This document shows positions 1 to 64,000 of a DNA stretch of 64,000 nucleotides, piece after piece. The stretch is from contig OZ218953.1 in the NCBI GenBank assembly GCA_965112735.1, forward strand, positions 806,001 through 870,000, in the 5' to 3' direction. The stretch's first letter is position 1, and each line of letters begins with the position of its first letter. The position numbers and the translations under genes were made by a program. The notes under the pieces are model-generated. The model did no database searches, was not told the DNA's origin, and saw only the letters and a list, made by a program, of their open reading frames with translations. The stretch is from Phaeosaccion multiseriatum. Taxonomy: Eukaryota > Protista > Ochrophyta, other classes.

Positions 1-2523
1 TCCTCCTCCTCCTCCTCCTCCTCCTCCTCCTCCTCCTCCTCCTCTTCCTCCTCCTCCTCCTCCTCCTCCTTCTCCCATTCTCGCTCCTGCTCCTCCTCTA
101 CCTCCTCCTCCTGCTCATTTGCACCCGCTGCTTCTGACGGGAGAACGACGCGCATGACCTCTCCTCCTTCGTCTCCGTCTTCTTGCTCCTCATCACCCCC
201 ACCACCATTCCCCTCCCCTCCCCGCGACTTGTTGGTTGCTGCTATTACTACTACTGCTGCTGGAGGCGTGTGGTGGTCCGATTTAGTACTGGCGACGCTG
301 CTGGCTGGGCTGCTGATGCTGCCAGTGCTGGCGCTACTAACGGGGGAGGCACAGGGAGCCTTCGAAGAAGCAGCGGCTCTCGCTTTGGCTTTGGAGGGAA
401 GAGGGCTGTTCATGCTGCTGCTGCTGTGCTCTTGGGAGAGGAAGCCTTGGATTGGAGCCTGCTTTTGCAGTGCGGCGTTGAGATGGAAGGTCTGGCGGCT
501 TGCCTTCCACACCTCGTGGAGAGCATCCTTCAGTGCCTGGTGTCAGGAGGGCACGGTGGGTGGGGTGAGGGGGGAGGAGGCGGAAGTGAGTGAGTGAGTG
601 AGTGAGTGAGTGAGTGAGTGAGAGTGAGTGAGTGAGTGAGTGAGTGAGTGAGTAAGTGAGTGAGTGAGTGAGTGAGTGAGAGTGAGTGAGTCAGTGAGGG
701 AGTGAGTGAGTGAGAGAGTGAGTGAGTGAGTGAGAGAGTGAGTGAGTGAGTGAGTGAGTGACAGTGAGTGAGGGAGTGAGGGTGAGTGAGTGAGTGAGTG
801 AGTGAGAGTGAGTGAGTGAGTGACAGTGAGTGAGGGAGTGAGGGTGAGTGAGTGAGTGAGAGAGTGAGTGAGTGAGTGTGAGTGAGGGTGTGAGAGTGAG
901 AGAGTGAGTGAGTGAGTGAGTGAGTGAGTGAGTGAGTGAGTGAGTGAGTGAGTGAGTGAGTGAGTGAGTAAGTGAGTAAGTGAGTAAGTGAGTGAGTGAG
1001 TTGGTGAGTGAGTGAGTTAGTGAGAGTGAGTGAGTCAGTGAGTGAGTCAGTGAGTGAGTGAGTGAGTGAGTGAGTGACAGTGAGTGAGGGAGTGAGGGTG
1101 AGTGAGTGAGTGAGAGAGTGAGTGAGTGTGAGTGAGGGTGTGAGAGTGAGAGAGTGAGAGAGTGAGTGAGTGAGTGAGTGAATGTGCACGTGCCTCCTGG
1201 TGTCTTCTGAGCACTGACCTGAAGTATTTTGGCCTCATCTATGATGAAGATCTCTCGCTTGTCGGGCGTCACGTTCACGTCAAACGTGCCCTGTGTATCC
1301 ATTGGGACCAGAGCAGAGCAGCAGCAGCAGCAAGTCAGCACTTGGTAATACAGCAGTTGGTGATACAGCACCAGCAAAGGTAGCAAGTGCAAACCCCCTG
1401 ATACAATGGTATGCCAGCCCCACGACACACGCGACTCACTCACTCACTCACTCACTCACCGCCGGCAGCTGTAGATCCAACACGCAAGCAGGCTTCTGCT
1501 TCATCTCGTACTGCCGCCAGACCTCGTTCAGAGCCTAGTCACAGAAGTATCACCAACAGGGGAAGGGGGAAACCGAGAGAGAACCTCAGACTTGGCACCT
1601 ACCTACCGCAAGGAAGGCAGTGAACGGATGGCAGTCAACGGATGCAGCGCGAGTGCCCTCTCGAGACGTTCGCTCCGCTCCATCCCGAACAACCAACACA
1701 GTGCCTTCCCGCTCTTCATCCCTGCCTGCCCGGACTCCCTACCCTCCCCCCATCCCTCCCTCCCTCTCCCCCCCTATCCCCTCCCTCCCCACCTTGGTGA
1801 CCCTCGGCAGGTCCACAGGTCTCCCGTTGAGGAAGATGAATTGCCTGTCGTTGTCGCTTCGACCCACGCCCTCTCCCGCCTTGGACACCAGTCCTACTAT
1901 GCGGACAGGAGGGCAAGGGGTGGCATCCTCCTGCTCCTTCCCGCCCTCCTCCCCCTTCTCCTCCTTGCCCTCCCCCTCCTCTTCTTCCCTCTCCTCTTCT
2001 TGATCCTTCGCCAGCACGGGGTCACCTCCCTCCTTCTCGGCTGCTGGAGAGGAGGAGGAAGAGGAAGGGGCGACCTTTGCCTCTGCGTTGGAACCACCGC
2101 TGCCGCTGCCACTACCGCTGGCGCTACCACTGGCGCTGCTGCCCCCTCCTGTCTCTACGTGGAGGGGAATGAGAGTTGACATGAACTTTGCTCCAAACAC
2201 GTTCGTAACGTTGTGTTTGAGCGTGTTGTTGTTCTGTCGAGCAAAAGCAAAACGAAGGAGAGGGAGCGAGAAGGGTGAGGTGCCCTGATGCACCTTAAAT
2301 GAGACAACAAGCACCCCACTCACTAACCCACACACCCAACTCCCACCCACCCACCCGCCCACCGACTTACGCACCATCCACCCGCCCATCCATCCACCCA
2401 CGCACGCACCCACCCACCCAATGACATACCACATCCACCCACCTGGGTACTGATGAGAGTCTGCCTCTTGCCCGCCGCAGTCACGTTCGTCACTGAAATC
2501 AAATTAACACGCACCCAGGGCGA

Positions 2524-2556
<33 letters not shown>

Positions 2557-4055: not shown

Positions 4056-4340
4056 TGTTCCCTTCCTTCTATAGTTCTCCCCACTCTGACAGCTAAGCAA
4101 CAACAGCCCGTCCACTCTTCCCCGGCTGGGAAAGGGGACTACTACGGCTCTTTCTCTGAGGGAGAGGGTCTCAGCAGCTGGATAGGAGAAGACAGAAGAG
4201 GGGGGGGGGGGGAGGAGAGAGACGGAGAGGAGAGAAAGTGAGTTTTAAAAAAAATGGCAGCTGATGGGAGTGCCTGGGTGTGGGGGTGTGGGAAAAAAGG
4301 AAGGAAGAAGAATAAGTGTAATCGCAAATAGGCAATAGTG

Positions 4341-6212
4341 ATGGCCCCTGAGGGGAGCAACACGTTTGATGGGACTGCGGGATTGCGAATCGTAGCGAGG
4401 CTCTTCTCAAGCAAGGACCTGTGGGGTGTGTGCAAGGAGGTTGATGAGGTCACCTCCCGAACTATCACGGTCAACGGCAGCAAGTTCTTGGGCAGACTGA
4501 AGCTGCAGAAAGAAGAGGAGGAAAGAAGAAATGGGGGTGCCAGCGCTGCTGCTGCGGCGGCTGACGGAGGGGGGGGAAGATCGAGGAGGACTCGGGCGAG
4601 GCAGAAGGAGGAGCAGCAGGGGCGCCGTGGACAGATGCAGCGCAGCATTCACAACCGGGGGTTCTTTCGCGTCACAGCCGTGAGGTTGCACGACATGGTG
4701 CACAAATCTGGGACAAGCTACGAGGACGCCCTTCGTGATGGGGAGGCTCTCGTGACGACCACCTTGGCGGTGCTACCAACATCGGTTAAGCATGTCAGCT
4801 TCGCAGGATATCACGGCCCCTTTCAAGCCGGCTTAGCTCTACCAAGCACTGTGGAGGCGGTGGACTTTGGTATGTGTTTCAATCAACATGTCCATCTTCC
4901 TTTGTCCCTGAAGAGTGTTCTGTTTGGGAACGAATTCAATCAGCATGTGGACCTTCCTTGTGGTGTGGAGGAGGTGGTGATGGGGACTTCCTTTAACCGC
5001 CCTCTCGTCCTCCCTGCCTCGGTGAAGCGGATTGAGTTTTGCTTGGGTTCCATATTCAATCAGCTGCTGACCCTTCCTGACGGTGTGTGGAAGGTGACGA
5101 TGGGGATGGACTTCAACCTCCCTCTCGTCCTCCCTGCCTCGGTGAAGTGGATTGAGTTTAGCCTGTTTTCCATATTCAATCGGCCGTTGACCCTTCCTGA
5201 CGGTGTGTTGAAGGTGACGATGGGGCGCGCCTTCAACCTCCCTCTCGTCCTCCCTGCCTCGGTGAAGTGGATTGAGTTTAGCCTGTTTTCCATATTCAAT
5301 CAGCCGTTGACCCTTCCTGACGGTGTGGAGGACGTGAAGATGGGGCCCGACTTCAACCAGCAGTTGACCCTTCCTGACGGTGTGGAGAACGTGAAGATGG
5401 GGCGCGACTTTAACCTCCCTCTCGTCCTCCCTGACTCGGTGAAGAAGATTACGTTCGGCGAGGGATCCCGATTCAATCAGCCTCTGGTCCTTCCTGATGG
5501 TGTGGAGGACGTGTGGATGGAGGGCGAGTTTAACCTCCCGCTGGTCATTCCTCCCTCAGTGAAGACGGTTCATTTTGGTAGACGCTTCAATCAGCAGTTG
5601 ACCCTTCCTGACGGTGTAGAGAAGGTGATGATAGAGGGAGACTTTAACCTCCCTCTCGTCCTCCCTGCCTCGGTGAAGGTGGTTGCGTTCGAGGAGGCTT
5701 CGGTTTTCAATCAGCACTTGACCCTTCCTGACGGTTTGGAGAAGATGTACATGCGGGGAGACTTTAACCTCCCTCTCGTCCTCCCTGCCTCGGTGAAGGT
5801 GGTTGAGTTTGGGGCGGCTTCCGTTTTCAATCAGCACTTGACCCTTCCTGACGGTTTGGAGAAGATATACATGGCGGGTGCCTTCAACTCCGCTCTCGTC
5901 CTCCCTCCCTCGCTGAAGCAACTTCGATTTGACTTCGCTTCCAAGTTCAATCAGCCTCTTCTTCTGCCTTGCGGCCTGGAGAGGCTGGCGCTGGGAGCTG
6001 CCTTCAGTTTTCCTCTCATCACTATTCCTGCTTCGCTTCAGCTTCTCATCCTGGCAGGTGAGTACGCCTGCCCCCTGCCAGCAGATGTACCCGATGGGCT
6101 GCAGGTGCTGAGATATGCAAACAAGGACGATGTCTACCGCAGTGAAGTTATCTGCGAAGCTTTCAGGACCTTCCGATCCGAGGAGGAGTATATGAAGTCG
6201 ATCTTTCGCTAG
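4341..6212 (+). CDS. Intronless FNIP-repeat (LRR-like) protein with possible N-terminal F-box
   Basis: Uninterrupted ORF from ATG 4341. About 21 repeats of FNxPLxLPx(S/G)(V/L)xx(I/V)x(F/M)G of 19/21 aa. N-terminal LRIVARLFSSKDLWGVCKEV resembles an F-box core. Confidence 0.88.
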   Translation: MAPEGSNTFDGTAGLRIVARLFSSKDLWGVCKEVDEVTSRTITVNGSKFLGRLKLQKEEEERRNGGASAAAAAADGGGGRSRRTRARQKEEQQGRRGQMQRSIHNRGFFRVTAVRLHDMVHKSGTSYEDALRDGEALVTTTLAVLPTSVKHVSFAGYHGPFQAGLALPSTVEAVDFGMCFNQHVHLPLSLKSVLFGNEFNQHVDLPCGVEEVVMGTSFNRPLVLPASVKRIEFCLGSIFNQLLTLPDGVWKVTMGMDFNLPLVLPASVKWIEFSLFSIFNRPLTLPDGVLKVTMGRAFNLPLVLPASVKWIEFSLFSIFNQPLTLPDGVEDVKMGPDFNQQLTLPDGVENVKMGRDFNLPLVLPDSVKKITFGEGSRFNQPLVLPDGVEDVWMEGEFNLPLVIPPSVKTVHFGRRFNQQLTLPDGVEKVMIEGDFNLPLVLPASVKVVAFEEASVFNQHLTLPDGLEKMYMRGDFNLPLVLPASVKVVEFGAASVFNQHLTLPDGLEKIYMAGAFNSALVLPPSLKQLRFDFASKFNQPLLLPCGLERLALGAAFSFPLITIPASLQLLILAGEYACPLPADVPDGLQVLRYANKDDVYRSEVICEAFRTFRSEEEYMKSIFR

Positions 6213-6481: not shown

Positions 6482-9400
6482 TTATATGCCAAACTTGCCG
6501 TGTGCGTCAAAGTCCTGCAGCAGCTGCTGGGCAATCTCCGCCACGAGCACCTGCGTCTCGTTGCCCGCCAAGCGGCTCACAGATGGGTAGAGGTCGAAGT
6601 CCCTCAGCAGGGCCCGAGGGTTGGCGTGCTGTGTAAAGACGATCTTGAGCATGCTCAGCAGGGCCTTGCCTACGAGTGCCTTGGGGTAGTGCAGGCGCTC
6701 CTTCACCTCCTCCACGAAGCGAGGCTCCCTCCCCAGGGCTTGCGCCAGTCCGCTCGAGCGCTGCGGGTGGGTGGGATTATATTGTATATATATATACATA
6801 TACATATATATAGAGTGGGGTGGTTTGGGGTGTGTGGTTGAATAAAATTGGTGCTGGTGGGTTGAGTGTGTTCGTTTCTGGTTGTTTGGTCCCGTAGTTT
6901 ATTCTACCCCGCTCCATACCCACCCCGTCTGCATCATGGTATAGAAGCTCATTCAGCACCGCATTTGACATCCATCTCTTGATTCGGCATTGGGCAAGGA
7001 CCATCAAACTGAAACGCAAACTGCGCCACTCTCATCCCATTGCTGACTTACTGAATCCAGTCACTCTCCCTTCCTTACCTGCATCATGGCGTGCAGCTCC
7101 TTCACCACCACCTCGAACTCTGCCTGCTGCGAGGCACAGTAGATGTCGATCAGCACGGCCAGGTGCGCCTTGCGAGTGAGTAGCTGGGTCATTCGCTCGT
7201 GGTCGTTCAGCAACCACACACTCAAAGCGCGGAAACACGTCACGTGCCACTGTCGATCTCGGCGGTTGGCCATCAGGTCCAAGTAGAACTCTGTTTTTCA
7301 GTTCAAAAGTTCGAAAGTTGGTTGTGTTTTGCCATTTGTGGCGTGCCATTGCAATACCAAGAGGGAAAGGCGAGAAGCAAGGGGAAAAGATGAGAGGTGT
7401 TATGTTATGACACGGAAAGGTCTTGGCAGAGATAGTAAGCGGGCATCTCGCTGATCTCGCTCACCTGCTCCTTTCCGCCTTCCTCCTCCCCCTCAACACC
7501 CATCCGCACATACACACACACATACACACACAAACACACACATACACACACATACACACACATACACACACATACACAAACACACACTCACACACACATA
7601 CACACACATTACACACACACATACACACACTCACACACACACACACACACACTCACACACACACACACACTCACCCGCGCTGCCGCAGTTCCAAAGGATG
7701 TCCCTGACGGTATTGGAGGTGTGTGCCATATCGCATATAATGTTGAGTGCAAACTGCTTCATACGAGACTCCTCTCGGATGCAGCGCATGAGGTGCGGCA
7801 CAAACCCAGCCACCGCCGCCTTCTCCTGCCGCTTCTTGATGAGCCTGCAGAGGTAGAAGAGGCACTGGAACACTTGGTTCTCCACCTCCTTCACGCCGCC
7901 GCCAGGGGTGCTGGACCCGCTGCCCCTGCGATGGCTGCCCGCATGACTGCTACCCGGAGTAGTCATGCCGGTATGACTGCGGCTGCTGCCACTGCCAGTG
8001 CCACTGCCACTGCTACTGGGCCCTCCTCCTCCTCCTCCTCCTCCTCCTGCTGCTGATGATGCTGCTGCTGCTGGCCCTCCTTTGATGCCCCCTCCCATTA
8101 TGCTGCCCCCTCCGCCCACCTCTCCATCTCGCCCAGAAGAGACCCCTGTGCCTGTGCGTGAAAACAGAGGACACGCGCGAGACGTGGGTGTGGAAGGTGG
8201 AAACAGTAAGGAAACAGTATAGAAATAGGAAAGGTCTAAGTTTTAAAGGGAACGCATCGTAACGTTCCTGCTCGGTATAGGGGGAAGCACATACACCAAC
8301 TCGGAGTCCACATACCCACTCCTTCATCACCTTCCTCAATCGGAAGCAGCCAGCAGCTCATAGAAGCAAACCGTCCAGTTTCTATCGACGGACTATCTTT
8401 GGGCTGTGTCAATAATATATGTCAATGAATAAGCAAGATGATGCACGCCACGCCGAACGACCACCCCTCCCCACCCCCCTCACCCCATCCACCCCTCTCA
8501 CTTACTGTGAAACAGGTCGTCGTCCCCTGGTCTATGCAGGAGAGAGATGAGGGTGGGTATGGCGTCGGCGTCGTCCAGCCTCTCCAGCGTGAAGGGGTCC
8601 ATGGAGATGTTCTTGAGTACGAGCAGGAGCGTCACAACGAGCCTGTGCAGCTGGGGAGGGGGCTTGTGTTGGCTGTGGGGCCGCACAGCAGTTGGTGATA
8701 CTGCCGTTCGTGGTATAGCAGTTGGTGGTACAGCGGTGGGTGGTAGAGCAGTTGGTGGTACAGCAGCAGTTGGTAGTACAGCAGCTGTGTTGGAGGCCTT
8801 TCGAAGAGCGTCCAACACTCCTTCGAGACAGCCCTCCTTGGTCATGCCCTCCTTCACGACTCGGTCACTCTTGCTAAAGTTTGTCAAAATCTCGGCCTGT
8901 TCGCATGGCAGGAGAAGGGAGGGAGGGAGGGAGGGAGGGAGGGAGGGAAGGAAGGAGGAGAGAGGAGGGAGGAGGGAGAAGGGAGGAGGGCAGTCGTTAA
9001 ATTAAGCACAGATTGAGAGGGAAGTCCCAGTGAAATGGGCGAACAAGCGCGCGACTCAGCGGCTCCAACTCCAACTCTTGTATGACCAACACACTCACAT
9101 GTTTCTCCAAGTACGCCCAAGTGGTCTCTGCCCCGCCCTCTTCTTCTCCATCCCCCGCCCCTACCCCTGCCCCATTAGCTGCTACCCCGCTGGGAGGCGG
9201 CGAAGCATCACCAGCACCACCAACCCCAGTTCCTGCAGCAGCAGTTGGTGATACAGCAGCAGCAGCAGCAGCCTTGGCGGCCTCTCTACGGAGAGCCGCG
9301 TCGAGCATCGTGCCAAAGCTTGTCATGACGTGCGCCAGCAGGCCGAGGCGCAGGAAGAGCCTGCAAAAGTCGTTCCGTCTGCTGCGCTGGAGGTCGAACA

Positions 9401-9688
9401 CGCGAAGCACGCCGTCAATGCCCAAATGCACCAAGGTCAGCGCGTCGTCTTGCTGCTGCCCCGCCGCTTGGCTGCGGCTGCTGTTGATGAGTAGCTGCTG
9501 CTGCTGCTGCTGCTGTATCGCCAACTGCTGCTGCTCCTGCTGCTGCTGTGGCGACAAGTACTGCTGCTGCTGTGGTTGCGCCTTGCTACCCTTGCGCAGA
9601 AAAGCCGCAGTCCGCCCTAACAGAATCCCTCCTGATCCTCCTCCTCCTCCTCTTGCTGGCGCTGCTGGTGCTGCTGTTATTGCTCGTT

Positions 9689-9719
<31 letters not shown>

Positions 9720-12700
9720 TCCTCCTGTGGTGCGTGTCTCGCCCTCGAAGAACAAGAAGCGCGCCCACGACAGACACTCCACCAGCACTGCCATTCCGCC
9801 GCAGCTGATGAACATTTGTAGAGTCTCTTCGCTGTTGCGGCACACGGCGGATATAAGGCAAGCAGCCTCTCTGCGGACAGCGCTGACCTGTACGGTGTGG
9901 TGTGTGGTGTGTGGTGTATCCGGCGGTCGGAGAGAGGGGGGGGGGCGAGAAAGAGAGGGAGGGAGGGAGGGAGGGAGGGAGGGAGGGAGAGAGAAAGGAC
10001 ACGGTTCAATTCTGATTGATGGGCACATCAATCAACGCCAAGAGATCGAGATCCATCTTCGAAAGGAGAGATTGGATCCTGTGTGTCGAGTATACGTGTG
10101 TAAGGGATTACGTGTGACTACGTGTGATTACGTATGATTATGTGTGAGCGTGAGTGGAAAGAGCGCTGAACAAAAGCCTTCCGCGCACGATCGCATCCCG
10201 ATGGGAGGATGGCTGGTCTGTCTCCTCCTCCCCCTCTCCTCTTACCTCTGGACGGCTCCTCTCCGCTTCGTCTTTACATGTTGCGAACCCAATCACCTTA
10301 GGTAGGATGCCCAAGAGTGCGAGGTGGGCAAGAGCCCGAGGGTTTCCGTCCACAATGATGTTGATCACTGACATAATGTGCGGAAGAGCGGTGGCCTTCT
10401 CAGCGACACACACACACACACACACAAGGACGCAAACACACACATACAGCATACAGACGAGCTGAGTACAGTAGGATAGGAAGCAACTTATTACATCAAG
10501 AATCGCCTTAACAAGTGAAGTCAAGTTCACTCGTCCGACGCGAATGAGACATGCCATTGTAGAGCATGCAAAACTGCCACCTGCTTGCCCAGCGTCCTTC
10601 CGTCCTTTCACCCTTCCTCCCTACATGTCTTGTACATACGGGCAACACACCTGGCGCACATCTGTGAGCTGTATGATGGGCACAACACCGTTCTCAGCGC
10701 TCATAATGTAGAAGCGGGCCTGTGGACAGCCGTCAATCAAGCCCCGCACCCTCTTGCACGCTTCAATCAAGCCACCAGCAGACTGCAACTCGTGCATTCT
10801 GAGGGAGGGAGGGAGGGAGGGAGGGAGGAAGGAAGGAAGGAAGGGAGGGGGGGAGGGAGGGAGGAGGGAGGGAGCCGGCAAAGAAGGGAGAGATGAGGGA
10901 GGGACTTACCAAGGGCCTCCAGAGTGAGAGAGAGAGAAGATAGAAGAGTTAGGGAGAGAGACACACACAGAGAGAGAGACTCACTTGCACAGTTGGTCGT
11001 GTACTTGGTTGCCCACTCGTGCGTGCATCTCTCGCTCTGCAGCACCCCCCGACTGCTCCTCCCTCTGAAGGTCCGCTTCGAAGTCGTTCTCGAAGGGGTC
11101 GTCAAGCACGTCCTGAGGCGGACATCGACGGAGGGAGGGGGCTGTTGGTCTCACGCTCAATTGTCCACCTCTGAGGGTCAAAGGCTAGACTTCCCACGTG
11201 GTCATTGACTACCTCTCCTTCCCACCCTGCCATAGACTGCCTTCCCTTGCCTACCTGCAGTGCCCTGGTGCTCTGCGCGTGCATCTTCTTTCTAAGCCTG
11301 TCCGCGAGGATGGAGCCCCTGCTCTCGTCTTCATGCTGCCCTTCCCACCTGTGAGGGGAGGGCGGAGGGGGAGGGAGGGAGGGAGGGAGGGAGAGAGGAG
11401 ACGACAATTATGATGATGACTCACCGAACCAACCACCCAATCCAACCCATTCATCCAACCAACCAACCAAGGCAAGCAAGCCCAGTCATCAATCAATCGA
11501 TCAATCGAGTACAACTAAATCGCACCTGCTCCGAGGACTGACAGGACTGACGGTAGGGGCCGAAGCAGCCGCCTTCTGCGGAGACTCGGGTAGTTCGAAA
11601 TCCTCGAAGTCCATATCCAGTCCCTCCTCCACGAAGCGGCTGACGTTGCCCGACGAGTGCAGCTGGGCCTTCGGGCCTACTCTTGCCCCTCCCTGCTGGG
11701 TGCCAGTCCTGGTGCTGCTGTTGCCGCTGCCTGCCCTTTGCAGTGTGAAGGCACTCTGACCGACGCGAGAAGCGGAGCGGCTGCCTAGCCCTTTGTGGGA
11801 GGCGGGTGGGGCAGGTGGAGGAGAAGGGGGAGGGACCTCAGATGGCACCAGATCGCACCATACACACAACACACACACGCACACACACACACGCGCACAC
11901 ACGCATACACCCACACACTCACACTCACACTCACACGCACACTCACCTTTGAATATGTCATCGCTCCAGTCCTCGTCGTCCCACTGACTCGAAAAGTGCT
12001 CCGAAAGAGCCTCCTTGTCATCCGCATTTGCCAGTGAGAGCACGACAGGCCCTTGAGGGGACAGAAGGGATTGCTTACTACCGCGGATGGCCCGCATACT
12101 TCGATTAGGGGGAGAGGGGGAGGGAGGGAGGGAGGGAGGGAGGGAGGGAGGGAGGGTGAGGGAACCACAAAATTTTGCTTTTGGAAGGGTGGGGCAGAGG
12201 GACGGAGAGGCGAGGAGGAAGGGAGCGAGGAAGGGAGGGAGGGAGGCAACGGCCATCTACTCAAGACCACTCTCCGCCAGTGAAGACTCACTGTCTATTT
12301 GCAGCCTCCGAGGAGGGGTTGATGTTGTTGAGTCCTAGCGGAGGCAAGCCGCCCGCCCCCCCTCCTGGTGCTCCTCCTGCTGCTGCCATTGTATCACCAA
12401 CTGCTGCATGTGGTCTCCCACCCTCCGAAGAGCTCCTATCTGCTGCTTTGGTCTCAACCAAGCCCAAGCCGAGCTCCTGGTCCCAGTCTTCTTCATCATC
12501 CTCCCCACCACCACCGCCACCACCTCCTCCTCCTCCTCCTCCTCCTTCTCCTCCTCCTTCTTCTCCTCCTCCTCCTCCTCCTCCTCCTCCTCCTCCTCCT
12601 CCTCCTCCTCCTCCTCCTCCCCCTCCTCCTCCTCCTCCTCCTCCTCCTCCTCGCTGGTCCGAGCCTACACTCGCAACAGTGCCCAGAGACAAAGAATCGA

Positions 12701-14051: not shown

Positions 14052-14114
<63 letters not shown>

Positions 14115-17970: not shown

Positions 17971-18836
17971 TGGGTGCGTGCACAAAGGCAAGATGTTAAG
18001 ACGACGGAGGAGGAGAGATGTTGGGTGAGGGCGCGAAAGAAGCTCAATAGAGGCGGAGTGGAGTGATGCGGAACATATTCGGCTCTAGCACGATGAGCTC
18101 AGCACTGAGAGGTCGGTGTCCACACCAGCGTTCTTGTAAAGAAGAAAGGGAAGTGGCAACGTACCCTGCCACAGACTGCTTTCCCACGCAGCTGACTTCC
18201 TCCTCCGGGTGCTGCTCCTCCTCCTCCTTCTCCTTCTTTTGCTGCTGCAGCTTCTGCTCCTGCTGCGGGCGCCAGCCTGTGGTAGGTGGAGTAGATCCAT
18301 CAGCCCCCCGTACCGCAGCCCCCGCCCCCGCAGCACCCTGCTGCTGCTCCCGGTGCCTCCAGGGTCGATGCATTTGATTTGGGCTGAGGTTAGGTTTGGG
18401 CTGAGGTTGCACAGCTGTGTCACCCCAGCACCTCTGCTACCCGCTGGGTGCTCATCAGCCCCTCTCCTCCACGGATCTGCTGCTGTCTGTGCCCATGCAG
18501 AGACGCGTAAACAAAACAAGCTCCAAGAGAGAGACAGAGAGATGTTCTGTCCTTCAAACAGCCTTGCTCTGCCTGTAAGGACCGCAGCCGCGTGTACTCG
18601 TCCCCTGGTACGAAAAATTCTACGTCGCACGCCCCTGTACTGCTCCCTGTCTGTGTGGAAAGGAAAGAGGGGGAGATGGGACAGACAGAGGGTGAATAAA
18701 CGATACGATCCGATCCGATCCACAGCGGAATTCGATGGCACCCGATGGCTACCTCCCTCTCTTTCTTTCGATTTGCTCTGCACTCTCTTTAAAAAGGCAC
18801 GATCCACCCAGAGGAAGCAGCAGAAAGAAGGGGAGA

Positions 18837-18980
18837 ATGTTTAGACCTCCACCTCCTTACAGAGGAGGCTCGCTGGGGCAGCATGGTGGGATGCAGCCAC
18901 CACATGGTCGGGGGGGGGGCGGAGGAGGGGGTCAGCAGCACCAGCAGCAACAGCAGCACCAGCAGCAGCAGCAGCATCAG

Positions 18981-19013
<33 letters not shown>

Positions 19014-31101: not shown

Positions 31102-31142
<41 letters not shown>

Positions 31143-39425: not shown

Positions 39426-39467
<42 letters not shown>

Positions 39468-43848: not shown

Positions 43849-43887
<39 letters not shown>

Positions 43888-50124: not shown

Positions 50125-50183
50125 GACAGAGACACAGCAGACAGACCGCTGTATCATCAACTGTATCACCAACTTGTCGGGCA

Positions 50184-52921
50184 CTATCTTCGATGCCGTG
50201 AGCGCCCTCTCGACCGATCTCTGGACCGTTCTCTGGACCATTCTCTGGAACATTCTCTGGACCGCTCTCTGGAACGTTCTCTCTGCCGCCCTCGAGAGTC
50301 GTCTCGTGAGTCATAACCACCTACACCTCTGCTATAACGCTCTCTGCTCATCCCCCTACCGCGACCCCTGCTCCTACTCTTGCTCCTGCTCCTACTCCTA
50401 CTCCTACTGTCTCGGTCTCTACCACCTCCTCTGCCACGCCTCCCGTTGCTGCTCTTGCTTCTACCAGGCCTATAGGGACCTCCGCCCCCTCCACCCCCCC
50501 CCCCCCCCGCACCGTAATCGTCACCCTCTCTGTCCCTCCTGCGGTCTCTCCCTCCACTCCCTGATGGACCAGAGAGAGAGTGCCGAGACTCAGAGTATCC
50601 GTCACTGCCTCCCCCCCCCCGCCCGTCGCCTCTCCCTTCACTGCGCTTGTCGCGTTTGTAGTGCCGCATCGCGTCGCGGGGGGGAGTTTCGCTCGTGTCT
50701 CTCTCCCTGTAACGCTCGCGTGAGTCTCTGATGCCTCTTGTCTCTCTCTCTCGGCTGCGGCTGGTGCTACGGTTGGTACTCCGTCGCTCCCAGTCATGAC
50801 TACTGCTGGTGCTGTCTCTCTCTCTGCTATCCCGCTCCACCGACACCCTCCCTCCTCCTCCTCCTCCTCCTCCCCCTCCTCCCCGTCTTCTTTCTCCTCC
50901 TCCCCCTTCTCCTCTTCTTCCTCCTCCTCCTTCTCCTATTCTTCCTCCTCCCCGTCTTCCTTCTCCTCCTCCTCCTCCTCCTCCTCCTCCTCCTCCTCCT
51001 CCCTCTCCTCCTCCTTTCCCATCCCTGAAGTTGGTTGGTGACTCCCTTGGAGGTGAGCGCTTCTCTTTCTGCTGTTGGTTTCGCTTCTGATGCTTCTGGA
51101 CAGCAGCAGTTGGCGATACAGCAGCACCACCAGCAGCAGCAGCTGGCGCTGAACGCTTGGTCGGTGCTGGCTTTTTCTTCTTCGCTATACCCTTGGTCTG
51201 AAACTCATGATAGGAGCCCCCCTCAGCGAGCTCAAGAAGGCCGAGCTCGGACGGGTTGTCGGGGATGCGTGGATGGGCCATAAAGTAGCGGTTTGCCAGG
51301 GCCTGCACCAGAGAGAGGCCGTCACACGTACATGCGTTACATGCGTTTCACAGACACGGAGGTGAAAGGGAAGAGAGGGAGAGGGAGGGAGGGACGGATG
51401 GATGGATGGATGGAGGGAGGGAGGGAGGGAGGGAGGGAGGGAGGAGGGAGGGAGTCAGGAGGGAGGGAGGGAGGGAGGAGGGAGGGAGTCCGGAGGGAGG
51501 GAGGGAGGGAGGGAGGGAGGGAGGGAGGGAGGGAGGGAGGGAGGGAGGGAGGGAGGGAGGGAGGGAGGAAGGGAGGGAGGGAGGGGGGGAGGGAGGGAGA
51601 GAGGGAGGTACGGAGAGAGAGAGAGAGCGAGAGAGAGAGAGAGAGAGGGGTGGGTGGGGAGGCGAGGGGAAAGAGGGGAAGAGTGAGAGAGACGGGGGAG
51701 AGATACAAGGGGGTGACACAAATCTGAAGAGCCAAAGGGCCACAGGACAGCACTCAAGAAAGCAGCAGTGACTGAGTGAGTAAGTGAGTGAGTGAGTGAG
51801 TGAGTGAGTGAGTGAGTGAGTCAGTGAGTGAGTGAGTGAGTAAGTGATTGAGTAAGTGAGTGAGTGAGTGAGTGAGTGAGTGAGTGAGTGAGTGAGCGAG
51901 TGTGACTGAATGAGTGAGTGAGTGAGTGAGTGAGCGAGTGAGTGAGTGAGTAAGTGAATGAGTGAGTGAGTGAGAGTGAGTAAGTGGGAGTGAGTGAGTT
52001 AGTGAGTGAGTGAGTGAGTTAGTGAGTGAGTGAGTGAGTGAGTAAGTGAGTGAGTGAGAGTGAGTAAGTGAGAGTGAGTGAGTAAGTGAGAGTGAGTGAG
52101 TGAGTGAGAGTGAGTAAGTGAGAGTGACTGAGTGAGTGAGTGAGTGAGTGAGTGAGTAAGTGAGTGAGTGAGTGAGTGAGAGTGAGTAAGTGAGAGTGAG
52201 TGAGTGAGTGAGTGAGTGAGTGAGTGAGTGAGTGAGTAAGTGAGAGTGAGTGAGTGAGTGAGTGAGTGAGTGAGTGAGTGAGTAAGTGAGAGTAAGTGAG
52301 TGAGTGAGTGAGTAAGTGAGAGTGAGTGAGTGAGTGAGTAAGTGAGAGTGAGTAAGTGAGTGAGTGAGTGAGTGAGTAAGTTAGAGTGAGTGAGTGAGTA
52401 AGTGAGTGAGTGAGTGAGAGTGAGTAAGTGAGTGAGTGAGTGTGAGTGAGTGAGTGAGTGTTTGGTTCCTGCATGTAACCGTTGATTTCGATTGACTCCC
52501 CAACCACCCACAACACTCTCCCCCCCCCCCACACACACCTCGCTCAACAAGCACCCTCGACACCCACCCACCCTCCCACCCATCCACCCCCGCACGCACG
52601 CACGCACGCACCCAGATTCTACCCCCGAACACGCGATCAAATGATCAAATGTGCTTCTGTTTCCGCTCAGTGACACTGGCACTGATCCATTGACTTACCG
52701 ACTTGGCTGAGATCCTCCTCTTGGGATCCTTCACAAGAAGTCTCGACATGAGGTCCATTGTGTCGGTGGTGAGGAAGGCTGCCGCGGCGGCAGAGCCGGA
52801 GTGGTACCGCTGCTGCTGCTGCTGCTGCGGTTGTTGTTGTTGTGGTTGCTGCTGTTGTTGTTGTTGTTGTTGTTGTTGCTGTTGTTGTTGTTGTTGTTGT
52901 TGTTGTTCTTGTTCTTGTTGC

Positions 52922-52954
<33 letters not shown>

Positions 52955-53382
52955 GCTTGTGGTTGTTGTTGTTGTTGCTGTTGTGGTTGTTGTTGCTGTT
53001 GTGGTTGTTGGTTGACGGCACTGCCATTGCTGCTGTCGGTGCCCCCCGCCCCCGCCGGATAGGCACGCTCCAACTGCTCCGCCAAGTGCTCCTGGCGAAA
53101 CGGTCAGAGCAGAGAGGTGGCCATTGTTGGGTATTGTTGGGTGTTATTGGGCGTTGTTGGGTGTTGTTGGGTGTTGTGGGTGTTGTTGGGCGTTGTTGGG
53201 TGTTGTTGGGCGTTTGTGGGCGTGATTGGGTGATGTTGGGTGTTGTTGGGCGTTGTTGGGCGTTGTTGGGCGTTGTTGGGTGTTGTTGGGTGTTGTTGGG
53301 TGTTGTTGGGTGTTGTTGGGCGTTGTTGGGCGTTGTTGGGGTGAGTTTGAAAGGTCGGGACTGAGAGAAGGCCATGGACATG

Positions 53383-53425
<43 letters not shown>

Positions 53426-55883
53426 TTGTCTGTCTGTCTTGTCTGTTTGTCTGTCTGTAATATGTTCTCTCTCTGACCTTCCTTCCTTCCTTCCTTCCTT
53501 CCTTCCTTCCTTCCTTCCGTCCCGACTGACTAACGGACTGACTGACTACCTGACGAACCAACACTCACCCTCAATCTGGGCGGAAAAGTCCCGCCCAACC
53601 CCGTCGAGGAAACCGCCTGCGCCTTCTGCTTAGAGAGGTAGGCCTGCACGGTTGGGTCCGACGGAGGAGGTGACCCCACAACCTGAGGAAGGGGGGAGGG
53701 GGGGGGGGGGTATAGAAGGGCGAAGGACGAAAGATTGGTCAGACTTCATCCCTTTCACTCCTCCTTCTCTTGCTCCTCCTCCTCGTCTTCTTCCTCCTCC
53801 TCCTCCTCCTCCTCCTCCTCCTCCTCCTCCTCCTCCTCCTCTTCCTCCTCCCCTTCCTCCTCCTCCTCCTCCTCCTCAACCCACGCACCTGATAGATCAG
53901 CGAGAGCTGATCGATCTCCGTCCTTCCCTGGCACAGCGGCTTGCCCATGATAAGCTCAGCAAGGATGCAGCCGACACCCCACATGTCCACTCCAGAGCCG
54001 TAGCTCGTGCTTCCCAGTAGGAGCTCTGGGGCGAGGAGAGGGAGGGCGGAAGGGATGGGATAAGTCAACGAAGGGAGGGTGGAAGGGATGGTAAGTAAAA
54101 AAAGGGAGGGCGGAAGGATGGTTCAAGACAACGAAGGAAGGGGTGTGGAAGAAGGAAATCAATGAAGTGTGTTGTGACCACTCGCAGCTGGATTTGAGGG
54201 GAGGGAGCGGAGGAGGAGGAGGAGGAGGAGGAGGAGGAGGAGGAGGAGAGGAGGAGGAGGAGGAGAAGAACATATCCTACCACAGCCTCTGTAACAGCTG
54301 CGGGCCTGTGGGCACCACGCTGGACACGTGACCCCTGAGATATCTCACCGCTGAGCTCACTCACCGGGGGGGCGATACCACAGAGTAATGACTTGGTTGG
54401 TGAGGTTGGTAGCGCTTTCCGACACGTGCCTGGACAGTCCGAAGTCAGCGAGCTTCTCAACAGGTTTGGAAGGAAGGAAGGAAGAAAGGAAAGAAGGAAG
54501 GAAGGAAGGAAGGAAGGAAGGAAGGAAGGAAGGAAGGAAAGGAGGGTGATGATGGAACAACAGGTTTGGTAGGAAGGTTAGGGTAGACTAGTGATTGAAG
54601 GACATCGCCATGAAAGAGAACCCCAAGCGGGGGGGCGAGGAGGGGAAGCGGCACGTATTGTTTTGGTGCCATGAGAAGCGGGCGGGCAATTAGGTGTCAA
54701 TCACCCTAAAAGAAAGCAAGCAAAGCCAAACTCAAAGTCAAAGCCAAACCAACTCCCAACCCCCCAAGTGAGTGAAGGAAGTTACGGACCCACCGACTGA
54801 CCCACCGACTGACCGACCGACTGACCGACCGACTGACCGACCGACTGACCGTCCGACTGACCGTCCGACTGACCGACAGACTGATCCTCTGACTGATCGA
54901 CCGACTGACCGACTGATCCTCTGACTGATCGACCGACCTACCTTGAGGGTGTGGTCGTTGCTGATGAGGAGGTTGCTGCACTTGATGTCTCTGTGTATGT
55001 AACGGTTCTCGTGAACATACTCCAGTACCTGCCAGCAAGCAACGCAAGGCAACACAACGCAGCGCAACGAGGGGCGTCAAGTCGAGTCAAGCTCGTGTGG
55101 AGGGTGTCGGTTACAGCATGGAGAGTGTCGGTTACAGCATGGAGGGTGTCGGTTACAGCTTACGGCTCAGTCGGGTCTGTCAGAGTTGGCTTACAGGAAA
55201 ACTCGGGTCAAATGTCGATCCCATTTATGGAGTTCGATATTGACAAGGTCACATAAACTGAAAAGGTGCGTGCCAAGTGCATGCAAGTGCAAACGTTCGT
55301 GGGCGCTAGTGCATACACACTTTCAAAGAGAGTCAAAGTCTCCTTTCTCCCTCTCTCCCTCCCTCCTCTCCTCTCTTCCTCTCTTCCTCCCTCCTTCCCT
55401 CCCTCCCTCACCTGCAACAGCTGCCTGAGAAGGTACTTGACAACAACGGGACTGAAGTGATACCGCTTGTCAAGTAGACCAGCGAGGTCATGATCCATGT
55501 ACTCTAGCACCAGGAACAGACTCCCTCTCCTCTGCTTCTCGCTGTGGTGCAGGCTGGACCCTCCAGCTCCTCTTCTCGCCCTCCCATCTCTGCTGCCGCT
55601 ACTGCCACCACCACCTGCCCCTGGGGAAGTATTCCGCTTCCGTCGCTGATATGACCAAAGGGAGAGCGAGAGAGAGAGAGAAGAGAGAGAGAGAGGGGGG
55701 GGGGGGAGGAGGTGGGAGAGGGAGAGAGAGAGGGAGAGAGAGAGAAGAGAGAGAGTCAAGGAGGAAGCCAAGGCGACGGGGGACAAGAGAGGCTGACGCA
55801 GGTGAGAAGAGAAGAGAAAAGAAAGGAGGAGATGACAGACTGCGATGGGGTGAACGGCCGGTGATGAGACGACGACAAGGAGT

Positions 55884-55972
<89 letters not shown>

Positions 55973-57039
55973 CTTTCCTCGTCCCCCGTTCTGCTGATCT
56001 CTCGCCCCCTCTCCCCTCCTTCTCCCCCCTTCCTCTCCCTCCGCTCCATCGCTCCCCCCCGAATCGCTACCTTCCTCCTCCTGCCGCCGCTGCCGCTGCT
56101 GCTGTCCATATGCCTCTAAATCATCGTCCTCCTCTTCGAACTCCTCCACGCTCTGCGCCGCTGCAGAAGACACGACCTCGTGGAGCTTCACCATGTTGGG
56201 ATGGGATAAGTCATTGAGAATCTTGATCTCTCGCAGCGCCGTCACGGGAAGCTGCACTCGGTCGGACCGGGCCAAAGGGAAGGGTGGCCAGGAGCAGCGT
56301 GGTGAATCAACCACATCGATCGATTGGTCGATGAATGGGGAGATGGCACAAGACGAGGGGGGTTGGGTGGGTGGGGGAGGGGTGGGCAGGGGTGGAGGGT
56401 AGTGTAAGGAGGGGCGAAAAACGGGAGAGGAAGTTCGGGGGGGGGGGGGGAAGCCTCTCGTCGAGGGTGCAATGCAAAAGGAAGAGGAGGGAGTACCGAG
56501 CGAAAGACAAAGAGGCCGATGAGTACATCCTGTCCCCCAACAATACACAAGCGGAATTACTTACTGTGACGATATTTACACCCCAACCCTTACAAAACTC
56601 CCTCACCGCCGTCCCTCCCTCCCTCTTTCTCTCCATGTATTTCTATATCTTGTTTCTTTCTTTCTTTCTTTCTCCCAATCGTTCAAACCACCCTGCTTCT
56701 GCTATTGCTACAGCTGCTGCTGTTGCTGCTGCATCCACTCACCCCCATGTTCTCGTGCCTCACTCTGATCTTCTTGAGAGCAACGACCTCTCCTGTGGCC
56801 TTATTCCGAGCTCGGTAGACCTGTCCGTACGTCCCTTCCCCAATCTGCTCTATCCGAGAGTAGCTCTCGATGGTCCGGGTGCCCCATTGCGGCCTCAAGC
56901 GCCCGGCAGCACCAGCAGCACCAGCATTTCCCTCATTGCCACCCTGTGCACCCTGTGGTTCCTTCGAAAAGCTGCTGCTACTGCTGCCTCTGCTGAGGCT
57001 GCTGCCCGGATGGGCGGTCGCCCCCACAGACCACGACAT
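50184..57039 (-). CDS. CDKC: Cyclin-dependent CTD kinase, CDKC/CDK12-like, with C-terminal RS domain, ~9 exons
   Basis: [28 protein letters not shown]; [12 protein letters not shown]; [13 protein letters not shown]; [12 protein letters not shown]; [25 protein letters not shown]; DPKRRISAK; final exon rich in SR/RE dipeptides. Confidence 0.9.
51769..52459. repeat. (GTGA/GTAA)n microsatellite in a CDK intron
   Basis: ~690 bp, direct inspection. Confidence 0.95.
53125..53340. repeat. 10-bp minisatellite (YGTTGTTGGG)n in a CDK intron
   Basis: About 20 tandem units. Confidence 0.85.
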
Positions 57040-59909: not shown

Positions 59910-59966
<57 letters not shown>

Positions 59967-61175: not shown

Positions 61176-62609
61176 TTATGAGGAGGCCCTGTCCATGCCT
61201 GGCTTGGCCATCTCGGTCACCGCCTTGGCACCTCGGCACGTGCACAGCACTCCACGGCCCACCTCGACAATCTCCACAATGTCGAAGCCGAACTTGGTAA
61301 GCACCTCCTTGGCCTCCTCCTTGGTGGTCCACTTGGTGCAGTAACCTTCCGTGGTCTTCATGGTGCACTTCTCAAAGTTGAGCTCGGCCCCGGCAATGTC
61401 GCCGCACAACTGGGGGTTGTTGGAGTAAAAGTGCTGGAGGGCGTCTCCAAAACACCTGCCGTTCCAGAAGCCGATGACAATGATGCCTGTATCTCCGGCC
61501 AGCAGCTTGAGCTGGCGGAAGGTGGCGGGCTTGATGGCGTCGGGAAAGACACCCAGCGTGTTGTTCACGCAGGCCACCACAACCTGTTGTTGTTGAGAGA
61601 GGCCGGTCGGTTCAAGAGGGAGGGGCGGGCGGGGTAGAGAAACACACACACAGAGAGCGAGAGCAAGAGAGAGAGAGAGAGAAGGTGAGTGCAAGTCGTA
61701 TGCGACAAAGGAAGGACGAACAGAAAGTGACAGGGCCAGACACAAGGAAACACTAACTAACAAAAGAAACGAAATGTGGAAGAGGAGGGAGAAGACACAA
61801 GCGACGCACCGGTCTTGATCGGACTCCCGGGGTGTGGGTGTCCAGCTCGTACAGCAGCTCCGTCGCTGAGCCCGTGATGAATCTCGTCTGTAGGTGGGAA
61901 ATTCACACACAGTAAGGAAAAGAGGGAGGGGGGGGGGGCATAACAAGCGTAAGACGAGAAGAAAGCCATCGTGGCAAAAAGTGGACGGAAGGAGGGCATG
62001 GAGCATTGTTCGGAGACAACGACAACACAGAGAAGCGCAAATCAGCACCAGAGCTTTTCTGGGGGGGGATGACGGGGATTGCTTGCTGCTTACCTTGGTG
62101 AGAGCATCCTTGGGCATCTGATTCCGCGCGTACTCGTTGAACTCAGGGTTGATGTCAATGCCCACGGCCTGCTTGTACTCGCTGGCAATGCCCAGAATCA
62201 CGTCTCCCGTGCCAGAGCCCACCTCCACAAGAGAGCACAGCTCGGCCCCGCCGCAGTGCTGCTTGGTGCGGCTGAGGATGAAGGACATTGTATCCTGGAA
62301 CAGCTGGAAGAAGTACGAGCCCTCAAAGTACAGGCTGTCGTGCCACACATCGGCGCTCATGGCGGACCAGTCGCCCTTCTTGGTGAAGGTTTGCTTGGCA
62401 GGGTCCAGGCCCTTGTCATCCTCCCCGGTGGTCTGCTCCTGCAGTTTGGCGATCTTCGCCTTGGCGTCGTCCTTGGCGCTGTTGACCGTCTTCTTGGCAT
62501 CGACCTTGAGATCCTTGACGCCGTGCTGGAGGTCCTTCACCCCGCTCTTGAGGTCCTTCTTAAGGTCCTTGACACCATTCATTCCCTCCTCGTTCTTGAT
62601 GAAATTCAT
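61176..62609 (-). CDS. Class I SAM-dependent methyltransferase, 3 exons, with N-terminal GVKDL heptad-like repeats
   Basis: Motif I LVEVGSGTG, post-I GIDIN, FITGSATEL. Exons ~62094-62609, ~61810-61889, 61176-61583. Confidence 0.82.
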   Translation of the reverse strand: MNFIKNEEGMNGVKDLKKDLKSGVKDLQHGVKDLKVDAKKTVNSAKDDAKAKIAKLQEQTTGEDDKGLDPAKQTFTKKGDWSAMSADVWHDSLYFEGSYFFQLFQDTMSFILSRTKQHCGGAELCSLVEVGSGTGDVILGIASEYKQAVGIDINPEFNEYARNQMPKDALTKVSSKQSPSSPPRKALVLICASLCCRCLRTMLHALLPSTFCHDGFLLVLRLLCPPPLPLFLTVCEFPTYRRDSSRAQRRSCCTSWTPTPRESDQDRCVACVFSLLFHISFLLLVSVSLCLALSLSVRPSFVAYDLHSPSLSLSLALALCVCVSLPRPPLPLEPTGLSQQQQVVVACVNNTLGVFPDAIKPATFRQLKLLAGDTGIIVIGFWNGRCFGDALQHFYSNNPQLCGDIAGAELNFEKCTMKTTEGYCTKWTTKEEAKEVLTKFGFDIVEIVEVGRGVLCTCRGAKAVTEMAKPGMDRASS

Positions 62610-64000
62610 TGTTGCGTGGTGCGGAAAACTAACAAGTTGTCCTGGCCGTCAAATAGTTGGGGTTCTGCATTGGGAGGCACATGAGCGAAGAAACGAGCGC
62701 AAAGGAGCGAGAGGGGATGAGAACAGGCCGTAATAAGTTGGTCTGGTCAATCTGGACCACGACCAGCCCCAGGATCAAAAAGCGAATCCAGACAAAAGTA
62801 CAGCGCAAGTTTCACAGCAACCACGCAGGCGAGAAGCTATCATATAGGCACACAGTCCTCTGCAGATGCAGCCAGTTGCAGCCATCCGCAGCCTCTCGTT
62901 CCAGACGCTATAGACTGATAGTCCGCACACCCAGAGAATGTGCCTCCCCTCTATTTGTGTCTCCCCTCCCCTGACCACCGCCAATGCCATCCCATCCCCC
63001 ACTCATGCACGACTACCAAAGGCTGCGCAAACACCCCCGCTTGCCCGCCCCAGCCCCCGCGCCCCCCTGCCGTCCATTCGCCTCATTCGGTTATTTTCCA
63101 CCACCACATTCCAGGCACACTTTTAAATTTCCCACCGTCCAAGTCCCCAAAAGCACAGCCACAGAGCAGCATCATGTCACATATAAGCAGGACAAGTCCG
63201 CAGCTCTCACCTTTTCTCTCACTACTGTAATGCTTTCTCTCTACCTTCAACAATGTCTGGTTTTAACTGACCCGCCATCCTTGCCACAGAAAAGGACCCC
63301 CGGGGACCGTTGAAGTTGGGTTCTCACACCCAACAACAGGACAGAACTTGCACGTGGAAAAATCTTTGGGAAGTGAGCAAAACACGCCTCCAGAGCCACG
63401 TATTCCAGCAAGAAGGGCATTGATTGCACTTGAGGGGCAAGAAGCAAAGTTACCGTTCACCGTGATCACGATTTTCTCGGGCTCCTTTCTGGCCGCAGGC
63501 TAGCGCTGGCCGGACTCTGCTTCTGGCTGCTCAGGCTGGGACAACAAAAAAAAATAACTGGGTGGGGTGTGTTGGGGGGGGGATGTCTGGGAGTTTTTTT
63601 TCTTCTTTGTTTACACCCAACCAATCAACCAGGATCGTATTTCCAGCTGGTACTGTATTTTCACTCAATTCACTCAACCGTTCTTTTCCCCACCAAGGTG
63701 ATGCTGTCAAATGACTCTCCAGCGCTCGGCTCCTTACATTACGTGCCTGTCCGGGCCAGCTCCTCTGGCCGGTCCTCAGATGCTCCCCCCCCCTCCCCTC
63801 ACCCCCTCCTCAGTCCTGCTGGACTACTCAAACAAGCGACATAGCTACGTAGTACTTACTCCACCACGTGAGGCGCGCTCTGCTCTGCTGCTGCCACTAA
63901 ACTATCTCCCCCCCAAGTCCTCCGCCTGCTGCGGCTACCGTATCACCAACTGCCGCCCGCTGCTGCCCCCTCCTTCGCCTCGCCTCGCCTCGCCAGGCCT

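Follow-up and report, generated by a model that had tools for sequence, protein, structure and literature searches.

A 64-kb window of nuclear DNA from the ochrophyte (stramenopile) alga Phaeosaccion multiseriatum (OZ218953.1), which is the whole stretch analysed here, carries a short word that is scattered over exons, probable introns and intergenic DNA. The word is described below in four forms, namely a 12-nt unit (TTGGTGATACAG), a 10-mer (TTGGTGATAC), a 17-mer consensus (GCAGTTGGTGATACAGC) and a 9-nt insert (TTGGTGATA). It is probably an ultra-short repeat family at the DNA level that was generated by insertion, and neither a peptide motif nor a conventional transposon.

The window contained 19 exact copies of TTGGTGATAC, 11 on the plus strand and 8 on the minus strand. 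Dinucleotide-preserving shuffles gave a mean of 0.06 copies and a maximum of 1, corresponding to an enrichment of more than 300-fold. When up to one mismatch was allowed, 36 sites were found against 1.8 expected. The 17-mer GCAGTTGGTGATACAGC with up to three mismatches matched 38 sites, of which the weakest two (43889 and 49769) were doubtful; the reversed-sequence control gave 0. All 19 exact positions and strands reported in the initial annotation were reproduced and its 14 one-mismatch sites were all real, while 9080, 44106 and 45831 had been overlooked.

Counting of k-mers showed that TTGGTGATAC was the commonest non-microsatellite 10-mer in the window. After removal of microsatellites, the word and the k-mers overlapping it headed every list from k=9 to k=15; at k=16-17 it was still among the commonest, outranked by words from introns, FNIP repeats and minisatellites. 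The remaining top k-mers belonged to tandem arrays, FNIP repeats or intron repeat sequence, and the word is the sole dispersed non-microsatellite word of the window.

Alignment of the copies showed a G at position -1 in 19/19 exact copies. The conserved unit was a G followed by TTGGTGATACAG (12 nt), which can equally be written as the 9-nt insert TTGGTGATA plus a repeated CAG. A unit length of 12 nt was adopted because two units stand head to tail at 50151-50172 and the 1342/1357 pair corresponds to 12 nt plus CAG. For the 21 occurrences of TTGGTGATA, CAG was present on the right in 14 and on the left in 12, and these triplets could represent microhomology, a 3-bp target duplication or unit sequence; the other left triplets were GAG, CCG, CTG, CGG, ACG and AAG, all ending in G. 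The orientation of the word tracked the CAG strand, and CTG adjoined it only 3 times. Eight of the interruptions measuring at least 9 nt within CAG tracts were members of the family.

Beyond the unit, alignment of all flanks and outward extension of every pair showed that the flanks were unrelated apart from CAG repeats. Fragments of a longer transposon had been named as an outcome that would refute the initial proposal; the flanks were alike only through CAG repeats and the halves of the word almost never occurred apart. GATACAG was preceded by a TTGGT-like half at 20/21 sites, with only 1 lacking the left half, and CAGTTGG without the right half occurred at background frequency. Tandem units (at least two) were present at three loci only (8685-8784, 1342-1366 and 50151-50172); the other copies were single, unlike the head-to-tail arrays of a micro- or minisatellite.

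Of the 17 one-mismatch variants, 13 were transitions and 4 transversions (p=3e-4; unrelated sequence would give 1:2), and exact, one-mismatch and two-mismatch copies stood at roughly 19:17:6, which suggests a mean divergence of about 7% from a single master sequence. The transition bias and the mismatch proportions look like those of a repeat family decaying from a master, unlike a site under position-specific constraint. The appearance of frame-preserving insertion noted earlier was upheld, as the copies resemble micro-insertions that later decayed by point mutation. The copies at 47043 and 47136 shared the private variant TTGGTGATAT and a GGC flank, so local duplication also happens. An extension, TGATACAATGG, was present twice, on the right side of the exact copy 12391 (12386-12396) and alone at 1399-1409, about 35 nt downstream of the 1357 copy; the lone occurrence is perhaps a sub-variant, or else an incomplete copy.

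About 25 of the roughly 38 copies lay in three consecutive plus-strand open reading frames (ORFs) at 37858-43287, 43263-45773 and 45867-48926 (1809, 836 and 1019 amino acids; stop-free stretches of 1820, 865 and 1025 codons). A stop-free stretch of 1820 codons cannot be due to chance at this base composition, and the big ORF was therefore treated as coding. The three ORFs seem to specify a single giant protein of low complexity, marked by poly-G, poly-E, poly-A and poly-Q runs. Their product had no Pfam domain, an 847-residue piece of it had 0 homologues among 1.84 billion representative proteins, and no internal protein repeats were found after low-complexity masking.

In these ORFs the plus-strand word was read as (Q)LVIQ about 10 times and as AVGDT 4 times, and its reverse complement was read as AVSPT 6 times. 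A protein repeat would show one peptide in one frame of coding DNA only; here LVIQ, AVGDT and AVSPT occurred in the same ORF. No intact copy lay in the TGG-TGA register of the big ORFs, and the sole copy there (38279) had no TGA. The three coding registers of the initial annotation, with none intact in the stop register, were thus borne out. All three antisense registers (3/3) are free of stops, yet the long ORFs showed only AVSPT (Ala, GCT register), which fits pre-existing CAG/CTG tracts, encoding polyglutamine (polyQ) or polyalanine (polyA), as landing sites.

Copies were probably intronic or intergenic at six places (1342/1357, 1547, 14914, 42844, 50151/50163 and 63940), and the CAG tract was absent at 4/6 of these. 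Conservation at the DNA level, as first proposed, was supported by the three coding registers, by the use of both strands and by the copies in probable non-coding DNA. Eight exact copies lay outside the 38-49 kb gene, at seven separate places from 1.3 to 64 kb and on both strands, so the enrichment was not limited to one gene.

The distribution of the copies did not follow that of CAG repeats. The region from 38.2 to 51.2 kb held 23 copies and 106 CAGCAG words, while the region from 17.6 to 38.2 kb held 0 copies and 104 CAGCAG words (Fisher p=5e-7), which showed that copies cluster near copies beyond what CAG availability explains. Among pure CAG/CTG tracts of at least 4 units, about 7/24 adjoined a copy and about 17/24 did not. 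The suggestion that the word seeds CAG or other low-complexity tracts was not supported by these tracts lacking an adjacent copy, nor by the CAG tracts of relatives, which lack the word; the frames used are those expected with pre-existing polyQ/polyA targets, and seeding of tracts is therefore not favoured. The copies and the other features of the window are listed in Table 1.

Table 1. Copies of the word and other mapped features of the window.
Position	Strand	Feature	Remarks
1342-1351	+	One mismatch, TTGGTAATAC	Transition; tandem with 1357
1357-1366	+	Exact	Second unit of 15-nt tandem pair; probably intron of minus-strand MutL-like gene
1547-1556	-	Exact	Flanked by CTG (left) and CTT (right), without CAG tracts; probably non-coding
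8685-8784	+	Degenerate tandem array	About 6.5 units of 15 nt (GCAGTTGGTGGTACA); exact 8692, variants 8722, 8752, 8766
9080		One mismatch	Probably chance; no flank support
9245-9254	+	Exact	Between (CAG)3 and (CAG)6; both strands open (AVGDT / AVSPT)
9515-9524	-	One mismatch, TTGGCGATAC	Within long CAG tract; LAIQ on minus ORF
12391-12400	-	Exact	AVGDT in 344-codon open stretch, minus strand
14914-14923	-	Exact	No CAG tract; beside (CCCAC)n microsatellite, (GTGGG)n on the copy's strand; probably non-coding
17517-17526	+	One mismatch, TTGGTGGTAC	
17600-38200		Region without copy	20.6 kb, 104 CAGCAG words; THOC3-like, intronless hydrolase and Zn-finger genes
38279-38295	+	Degenerate, GCAGTTGGCTATACAGC	Sole copy in TGA register of big ORF, TGA lost (SWLYS)
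39467-39476	+	One mismatch, TTAGTGATAC	Directly 3' of (CAG)13; AVSDT
40045-40054	-	Exact	Antisense to big ORF; AVSPT
40460-40469	+	One mismatch, TTGGTGATGC	AVGDA
40601-40610	+	Exact	AVGDT
41110-41119	+	One mismatch, GTGGTGATAC	QVVIQ
41284-41293	+	Exact	RLVIQ
41578-41587	+	One mismatch, TTGGTGATTC	QLVIR
41846-41855	+	Exact	Non-CAG left flank (CACGAGCACG); HVGDT
42133-42142	-	Exact	Antisense; AVSPT; adjoins (CTG)5
42289-42298	+	Exact	Left flank GAG; ELVIQ
42454-42463	+	Exact	Left flank CCG; PLVIQ
42844-42853	+	Exact	9 nt past GTGAGT donor-like site, then (AGGG)n; probably intron start
43836-43845	+	Exact	Followed by (CAG)11; QLVIQ
44106-44115	+	One mismatch, TTGGTGAGAC	Weaker flank support
44265-44274	+	Exact	Right flank CAC; QLVIH
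44607-44616	+	One mismatch, TTGGTGACAC	ELVTQ
45168-45177	-	Exact	Antisense; TVSPT
45204-45220	-	Degenerate, GCAGTCGGCGATACAGC	AVSPT
45831		One mismatch	
47043-47052	-	One mismatch, TTGGTGATAT	Probably local duplication with 47136
47136-47145	-	One mismatch, TTGGTGATAT	Twin of 47043
50151-50172	-	Two head-to-tail 12-nt units	TTGGTGATACAG TTGATGATACAG; no surrounding CAG tract
51110-51119	+	One mismatch, TTGGCGATAC	In CAG tract
63940-63949	-	Exact	Near window end
15989-16174		Minisatellite, 25 nt x7.4	CACCTATATACTCCTATACCCGTAC; unrelated to word
24078-25535	-	Alpha/beta-hydrolase-like gene	Signal peptide; intronless
26534-27787	-	Cys-rich ORF	Apparently intronless
34646-36622	-	Zf_WRKY19-type zinc-finger repeat protein	Intronless
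53124-53340		Minisatellite, 10 nt x22	TTGTTGGGTG; unrelated to word
54787-54937		Minisatellite, 12 nt x10-12	GACCGACCGACT; unrelated to word

As the manner of spread, we tentatively favour templated copying primed by CAG or terminal microhomology, with selection filtering the frames. A fixed 12-nt TTGGTGATACAG would be written repeatedly into unrelated sites, after a G and usually after CAG, in an orientation set by the CAG strand. New copies would be products of templated repair or replication, without the action of a transposase. A 3' end that terminates in ...G, ...AG or ...CAG after breakage or stalling might pair with the CAG beside an existing copy, copy the unit, and then rejoin via the CAG at the unit's end. 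Such a process would be microhomology-mediated template switching or, where the flanking CAG tracts are longer, short-tract ectopic conversion. After insertion the copies would drift by point mutation and occasionally duplicate in tandem, and selection would purge those in the TGA-making register and those placed where four added residues are not tolerated. Since 12 nt keep the frame, such selection would leave coding copies mainly in the polyQ/polyA tracts of disordered orphan proteins.

Building the word from a CAG tract would need about 7 substitutions, so insertion as a block is a much simpler route, and clustering near other copies fits templating from neighbouring copies. With no terminal inverted repeats (TIRs), shared interior, hairpin, RNA family or nearby inverted template, the conventional alternatives were left without support. 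We infer the copying mechanism and the lack of any function of the word; the family, its unit, contexts, frames and mutation pattern were observed.

Several points weigh against templated micro-insertion. No empty site was seen: no orthologue, allele or paralogue without the unit came to light, and insertion is deduced from the pattern of the copies. About 6/19 exact copies had no left CAG tract and a possible microhomology of 1-2 nt, which is too short for homologous conversion, so such copies need the microhomology version of the process. To our knowledge, no repair pathway has been established to yield trans-templated insertions of the same sequence so frequently. Tolerance of insertions by a single disordered gene might also explain the clustering. 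The exact word may also have a selected function; it contains CAGTTG, which resembles a Myb-type core. The whole case comes from one 64-kb window.

A wider claim would make the 12-nt unit the smallest repeat so far observed to propagate itself in any eukaryotic nuclear genome, present genome-wide in tens of thousands of copies, spread by templated micro-insertion (from existing copies via CAG microhomology, or from a short RNA template) and continually adding four-residue inserts (LVIQ, VGDT, VSPT) to proteins. This claim is doubtful at present.

Candidate parent elements and structures were searched for in the window. Whole-window repeat finding and self-BLAST, used to look for pieces of a longer repeat, gave only microsatellites, FNIP repeats and poly-Glu arrays. 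Miniature inverted-repeat transposable elements (MITEs) formed by inward-facing pairs (1357/1547, 9245/9515, 41846/42133 and 44607/45168) were rejected, the interiors being no more alike than shuffles once microsatellite sequence was set aside. Half-site searches of the window found no split full-length element. As to tails of 5'-truncated retroelements lacking long terminal repeats, no copy was truncated within the unit, and GATACAG alone occurred once.

Folding of a CAG-stem hairpin with the 9-nt insert as loop gave inconsistent DNA structures, mostly no better than shuffles (z -2.5 to +0.7), and in a search for quasi-palindrome templating the best inverted match within 80 nt was the same as at random positions. 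Comparison of the window with Rfam gave no match at gathering score and no tRNA, and a relaxed scan gave only low-complexity noise. An origin from a small RNA, considered for a likeness to U6 before ACAGAGA and to tRNA D-arms, was dropped, as there was no Rfam or tRNA match at any threshold.

Among the other explanations, the first is a local curiosity, in which a 12-15-nt minisatellite unit from a few neighbouring low-complexity genes was scattered locally by unequal exchange, slippage and conversion, with few or no copies elsewhere in the genome. It is consistent with the location of about 2/3 of the copies in one 11-kb orphan gene, with the three places that have true tandem units and with the local duplication at 47043/47136. 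Such an origin is nevertheless unlikely, given the eight exact copies at seven places outside that gene, which occupy both strands and fall in non-coding DNA as well as in different genes, and given the unrelated flanks, which show that the copies were not carried by segmental duplication. The 0 copies in the external collections searched would also suit it; these collections do not include this organism and are uninformative on the rest of its genome.

Unlikely as well, in our estimation, is a dedicated writer, either a reverse transcriptase that copies a fixed, short RNA template, much as telomerase does in healing breaks or as an abortive retroelement might, or a cut-and-paste element that leaves a standard excision footprint with a 3-bp CAG/CTG duplication. 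The constant insert has sharp boundaries, CAG often stands on both sides like a 3-bp target-site duplication, and some units are head to tail; duplications of CWG or TWA are typical of PIF/Harbinger elements, and telomerase is known to add telomere units at internal breaks. Against this, no element in the window began with TTGGT... and ended with ...GATA, the two halves were almost never apart, and a Pfam scan of about 30 long ORFs of the window revealed no reverse transcriptase or transposase gene. Each version also meets a difficulty of its own: TTGGTGATA does not consist of two inverted-repeat ends, and footprints usually vary while here 19 copies are identical; single units prevail, unlike the products of a processive, telomerase-like enzyme; and there is no graded 5' truncation as at the 3' ends of long interspersed elements (LINEs).

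A functional DNA site for a transcription, chromatin, origin or recombination factor, with exactness maintained by selection or by binding-linked drive, is less probable still. Many copies are exact over 11-13 nt, one gene and its surroundings carry a dense homotypic cluster of them, and strand independence would suit a site in duplex DNA. Such a site would have to arise from CAG repeats by the roughly 7 point changes given above, and we know of no mechanism by which a binding site inserts itself. The copies lie in exons, probable introns and intergenic DNA alike, their variants show neutral-looking, transition-biased decay and no position-specific tolerance, and the word is absent from 20 kb holding several genes and from the loci of three relatives. 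There was no structural or RNA signal. The initial annotation had suggested the binding site of a chromatin, replication or recombination protein; no evidence for one was found.

An assembly, adapter or polishing artefact, which the short and constant sequence might suggest, is very improbable, as the variants are transition-biased, frames are kept, the stop register is avoided only where DNA is coding, and the flanks are unique; the word resembles no common adapter known to us. Hardly credible, too, is selection of a peptide motif, or convergence at the codon level, in repetitive proteins. The roughly 10 LVIQ in one protein might suggest it, but the frame analysis contradicts it (three peptides from the same word in one ORF, plus probable non-coding copies), and the big ORFs lack homologues, domains and, once low complexity is masked, internal repeats.

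Paralogues or relatives were sought through the FNIP, THOC3 and methyltransferase genes, and only distant relatives were found. The best relatives of the methyltransferase (57-62% identity) were in Choristocarpus tenellus (a brown alga), Chrysoparadoxa australica, and JGI or Logan contigs; the FNIP search gave nothing above 31% identity. In 57 kb around the genes of three distant relatives there were 0 exact copies and no analogous word, and one of these loci had 170 CAGCAG. A viral origin was rejected: the 17-mer had 34 single matches in IMG/VR, of which 21 were one AT-rich phage gene, 2 shared another sequence and the rest were scattered, a pattern that indicates chance matches.

Among metagenome contigs, the 19-mer gave 20 single matches in unrelated DNA. 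One of the outside matches (JACLAD010007979.1, 3721-3739, GC 49%) was followed by CAA/CAG repeats and was the only one in a CAG-like context; it was a single copy in 7.8 kb and is probably due to chance. In the full-text literature, 10-mers and 13-mers of the word occurred only as primers for polymerase chain reaction (PCR) or loop-mediated isothermal amplification (LAMP), and a literature search for a 'Sower' repeat of Ectocarpus found no paper. The word is specific to this organism or its close kin, because the relatives' loci, the viral and metagenome scans and the literature give no true copy.

The window also contains split eukaryotic genes (THOC3-like, CDK-like, MutL-like, rhomboid and methyltransferase). 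Apparently intronless genes are clustered at 22000-37000, and an FNIP-repeat gene lies at 4338-6212; all of these are without the 12-nt word, which agrees with the earlier observation of no copy in the intronless FNIP, hydrolase and Zn-finger genes. The Zf_WRKY19-type zinc-finger repeat is reminiscent of the brown-algal EsV-1-7 cysteine-rich repeat. For the intronless hydrolase no relative was found in IMG/VR or PDB and an exact look-up was empty, and a viral origin of this gene has no support. An inverted pair of about 290 bp with 66% identity (23488-23778 against 33294-33022) lies among the intronless genes; its members could be paralogous exons that have diverged, or else could mark the two ends of an insertion.

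The microsatellite load of the window is extreme, with 81 tandem-repeat rows in 64 kb, among them (AGTG)n arrays of about 600-700 bp at 585-1181 and 51767-52460 and, within an ORF, 1.47 kb of (GAG)n (47331-48801). Most introns hold (AGGG)n, (GGA)n, (CCTC)n and dinucleotide arrays. ORFs run through introns of the CDK-like, methyltransferase and THOC3-like genes (55208-56548 and 61176-62609 on the minus strand, 18735-19628 on the plus strand) because these introns are stop-poor CT/GA/CA microsatellites, and mechanical ORF lists therefore merge exons with introns.

If the pattern holds genome-wide, fixed inserts far smaller than any recognised mobile element would reach high copy number in a eukaryote and settle in exons while leaving these intact. 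Such a family would escape repeat finders and transposon classifications. It would offer a natural system for templated insertion during break repair or replication restart, could reveal the part that microsatellite tracts play as landing sites and the way in which disordered protein segments expand, and would be a new source of coding indels and of low-complexity evolution. If the word is instead a protein-binding site, such a density within coding sequence itself would be unusual.

Comparison with known systems showed partial likenesses. Interrupted microsatellites and minisatellites share with the word the interruption of CAG tracts and the 12- or 15-nt arrays at three loci. Ordinary interruptions are locus-specific point variants (e.g., CAA, CAC or CAT), whereas the same 9-nt interruption is found here at many unlinked tracts and off-tract. 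Interstitial telomeric repeats are likewise short, fixed, templated units at internal sites with terminal microhomology; stramenopile telomeres are reported to be of the TTAGGG type, the window contains neither a telomere nor a telomerase RNA, and the word differs in occurring mostly as single units. Footprints of the PIF/Harbinger type (3-bp CWG duplication) also place constant bases between trinucleotide copies and often preserve the frame, but no parent element is present in the window, the 9 inner bases are not inverted termini, and identity at 19 sites would be unusual for footprints.

MITEs and algal introners, the latter known in other stramenopile and green algae, resemble the word as high-copy, non-autonomous sequences dispersed in genes, including introns. 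They measure 50-1000 bp and have TIRs, target duplications and conserved interiors, and no such TIRs or interior were present at the word. Rickettsia palindromic elements (RPEs) also insert in frame into ORFs and add a peptide segment; they are palindromic and about 100-150 bp long, while the word is ten times shorter at 12 nt, has no predicted structure and belongs to a eukaryote. Among described eukaryotic nuclear repeats, no class of such a form is known to us, and the literature searched yielded no 12-nt, single-unit, dispersed, frame-independent repeat; on the evidence of this one window the word appears to be new as a pattern.

HIP1 of cyanobacteria and Chi of E. coli are, like the word, short and scattered inside genes. 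HIP1 is a palindrome of 8 nt, and the orientation of Chi, another 8-mer, follows replication; the word is 12 nt long, is oriented by the CAG strand and is non-palindromic, the reverse complement of TTGGTGATAC being GTATCACCAA, so that the self-complementarity of HIP1 is missing. The DNA uptake sequences (DUS) of Neisseria and the uptake signal sequences (USS) of Pasteurellaceae are 9-12-nt words, enriched hundreds-fold on both strands and in several frames within genes. The word shows the same strong over-representation on two strands, also inside genes. DUS and USS belong to competent bacteria, in which they result from biased uptake and recombination of point variants, whereas the word lies in a eukaryotic nuclear locus with introns (the split THOC3, CDK, MutL-like and rhomboid genes), appears to have been inserted as a block and prefers CAG contexts. 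The analogies with DUS, HIP1 and Chi drawn in the initial annotation fail as membership of any of these classes and hold as statistics.

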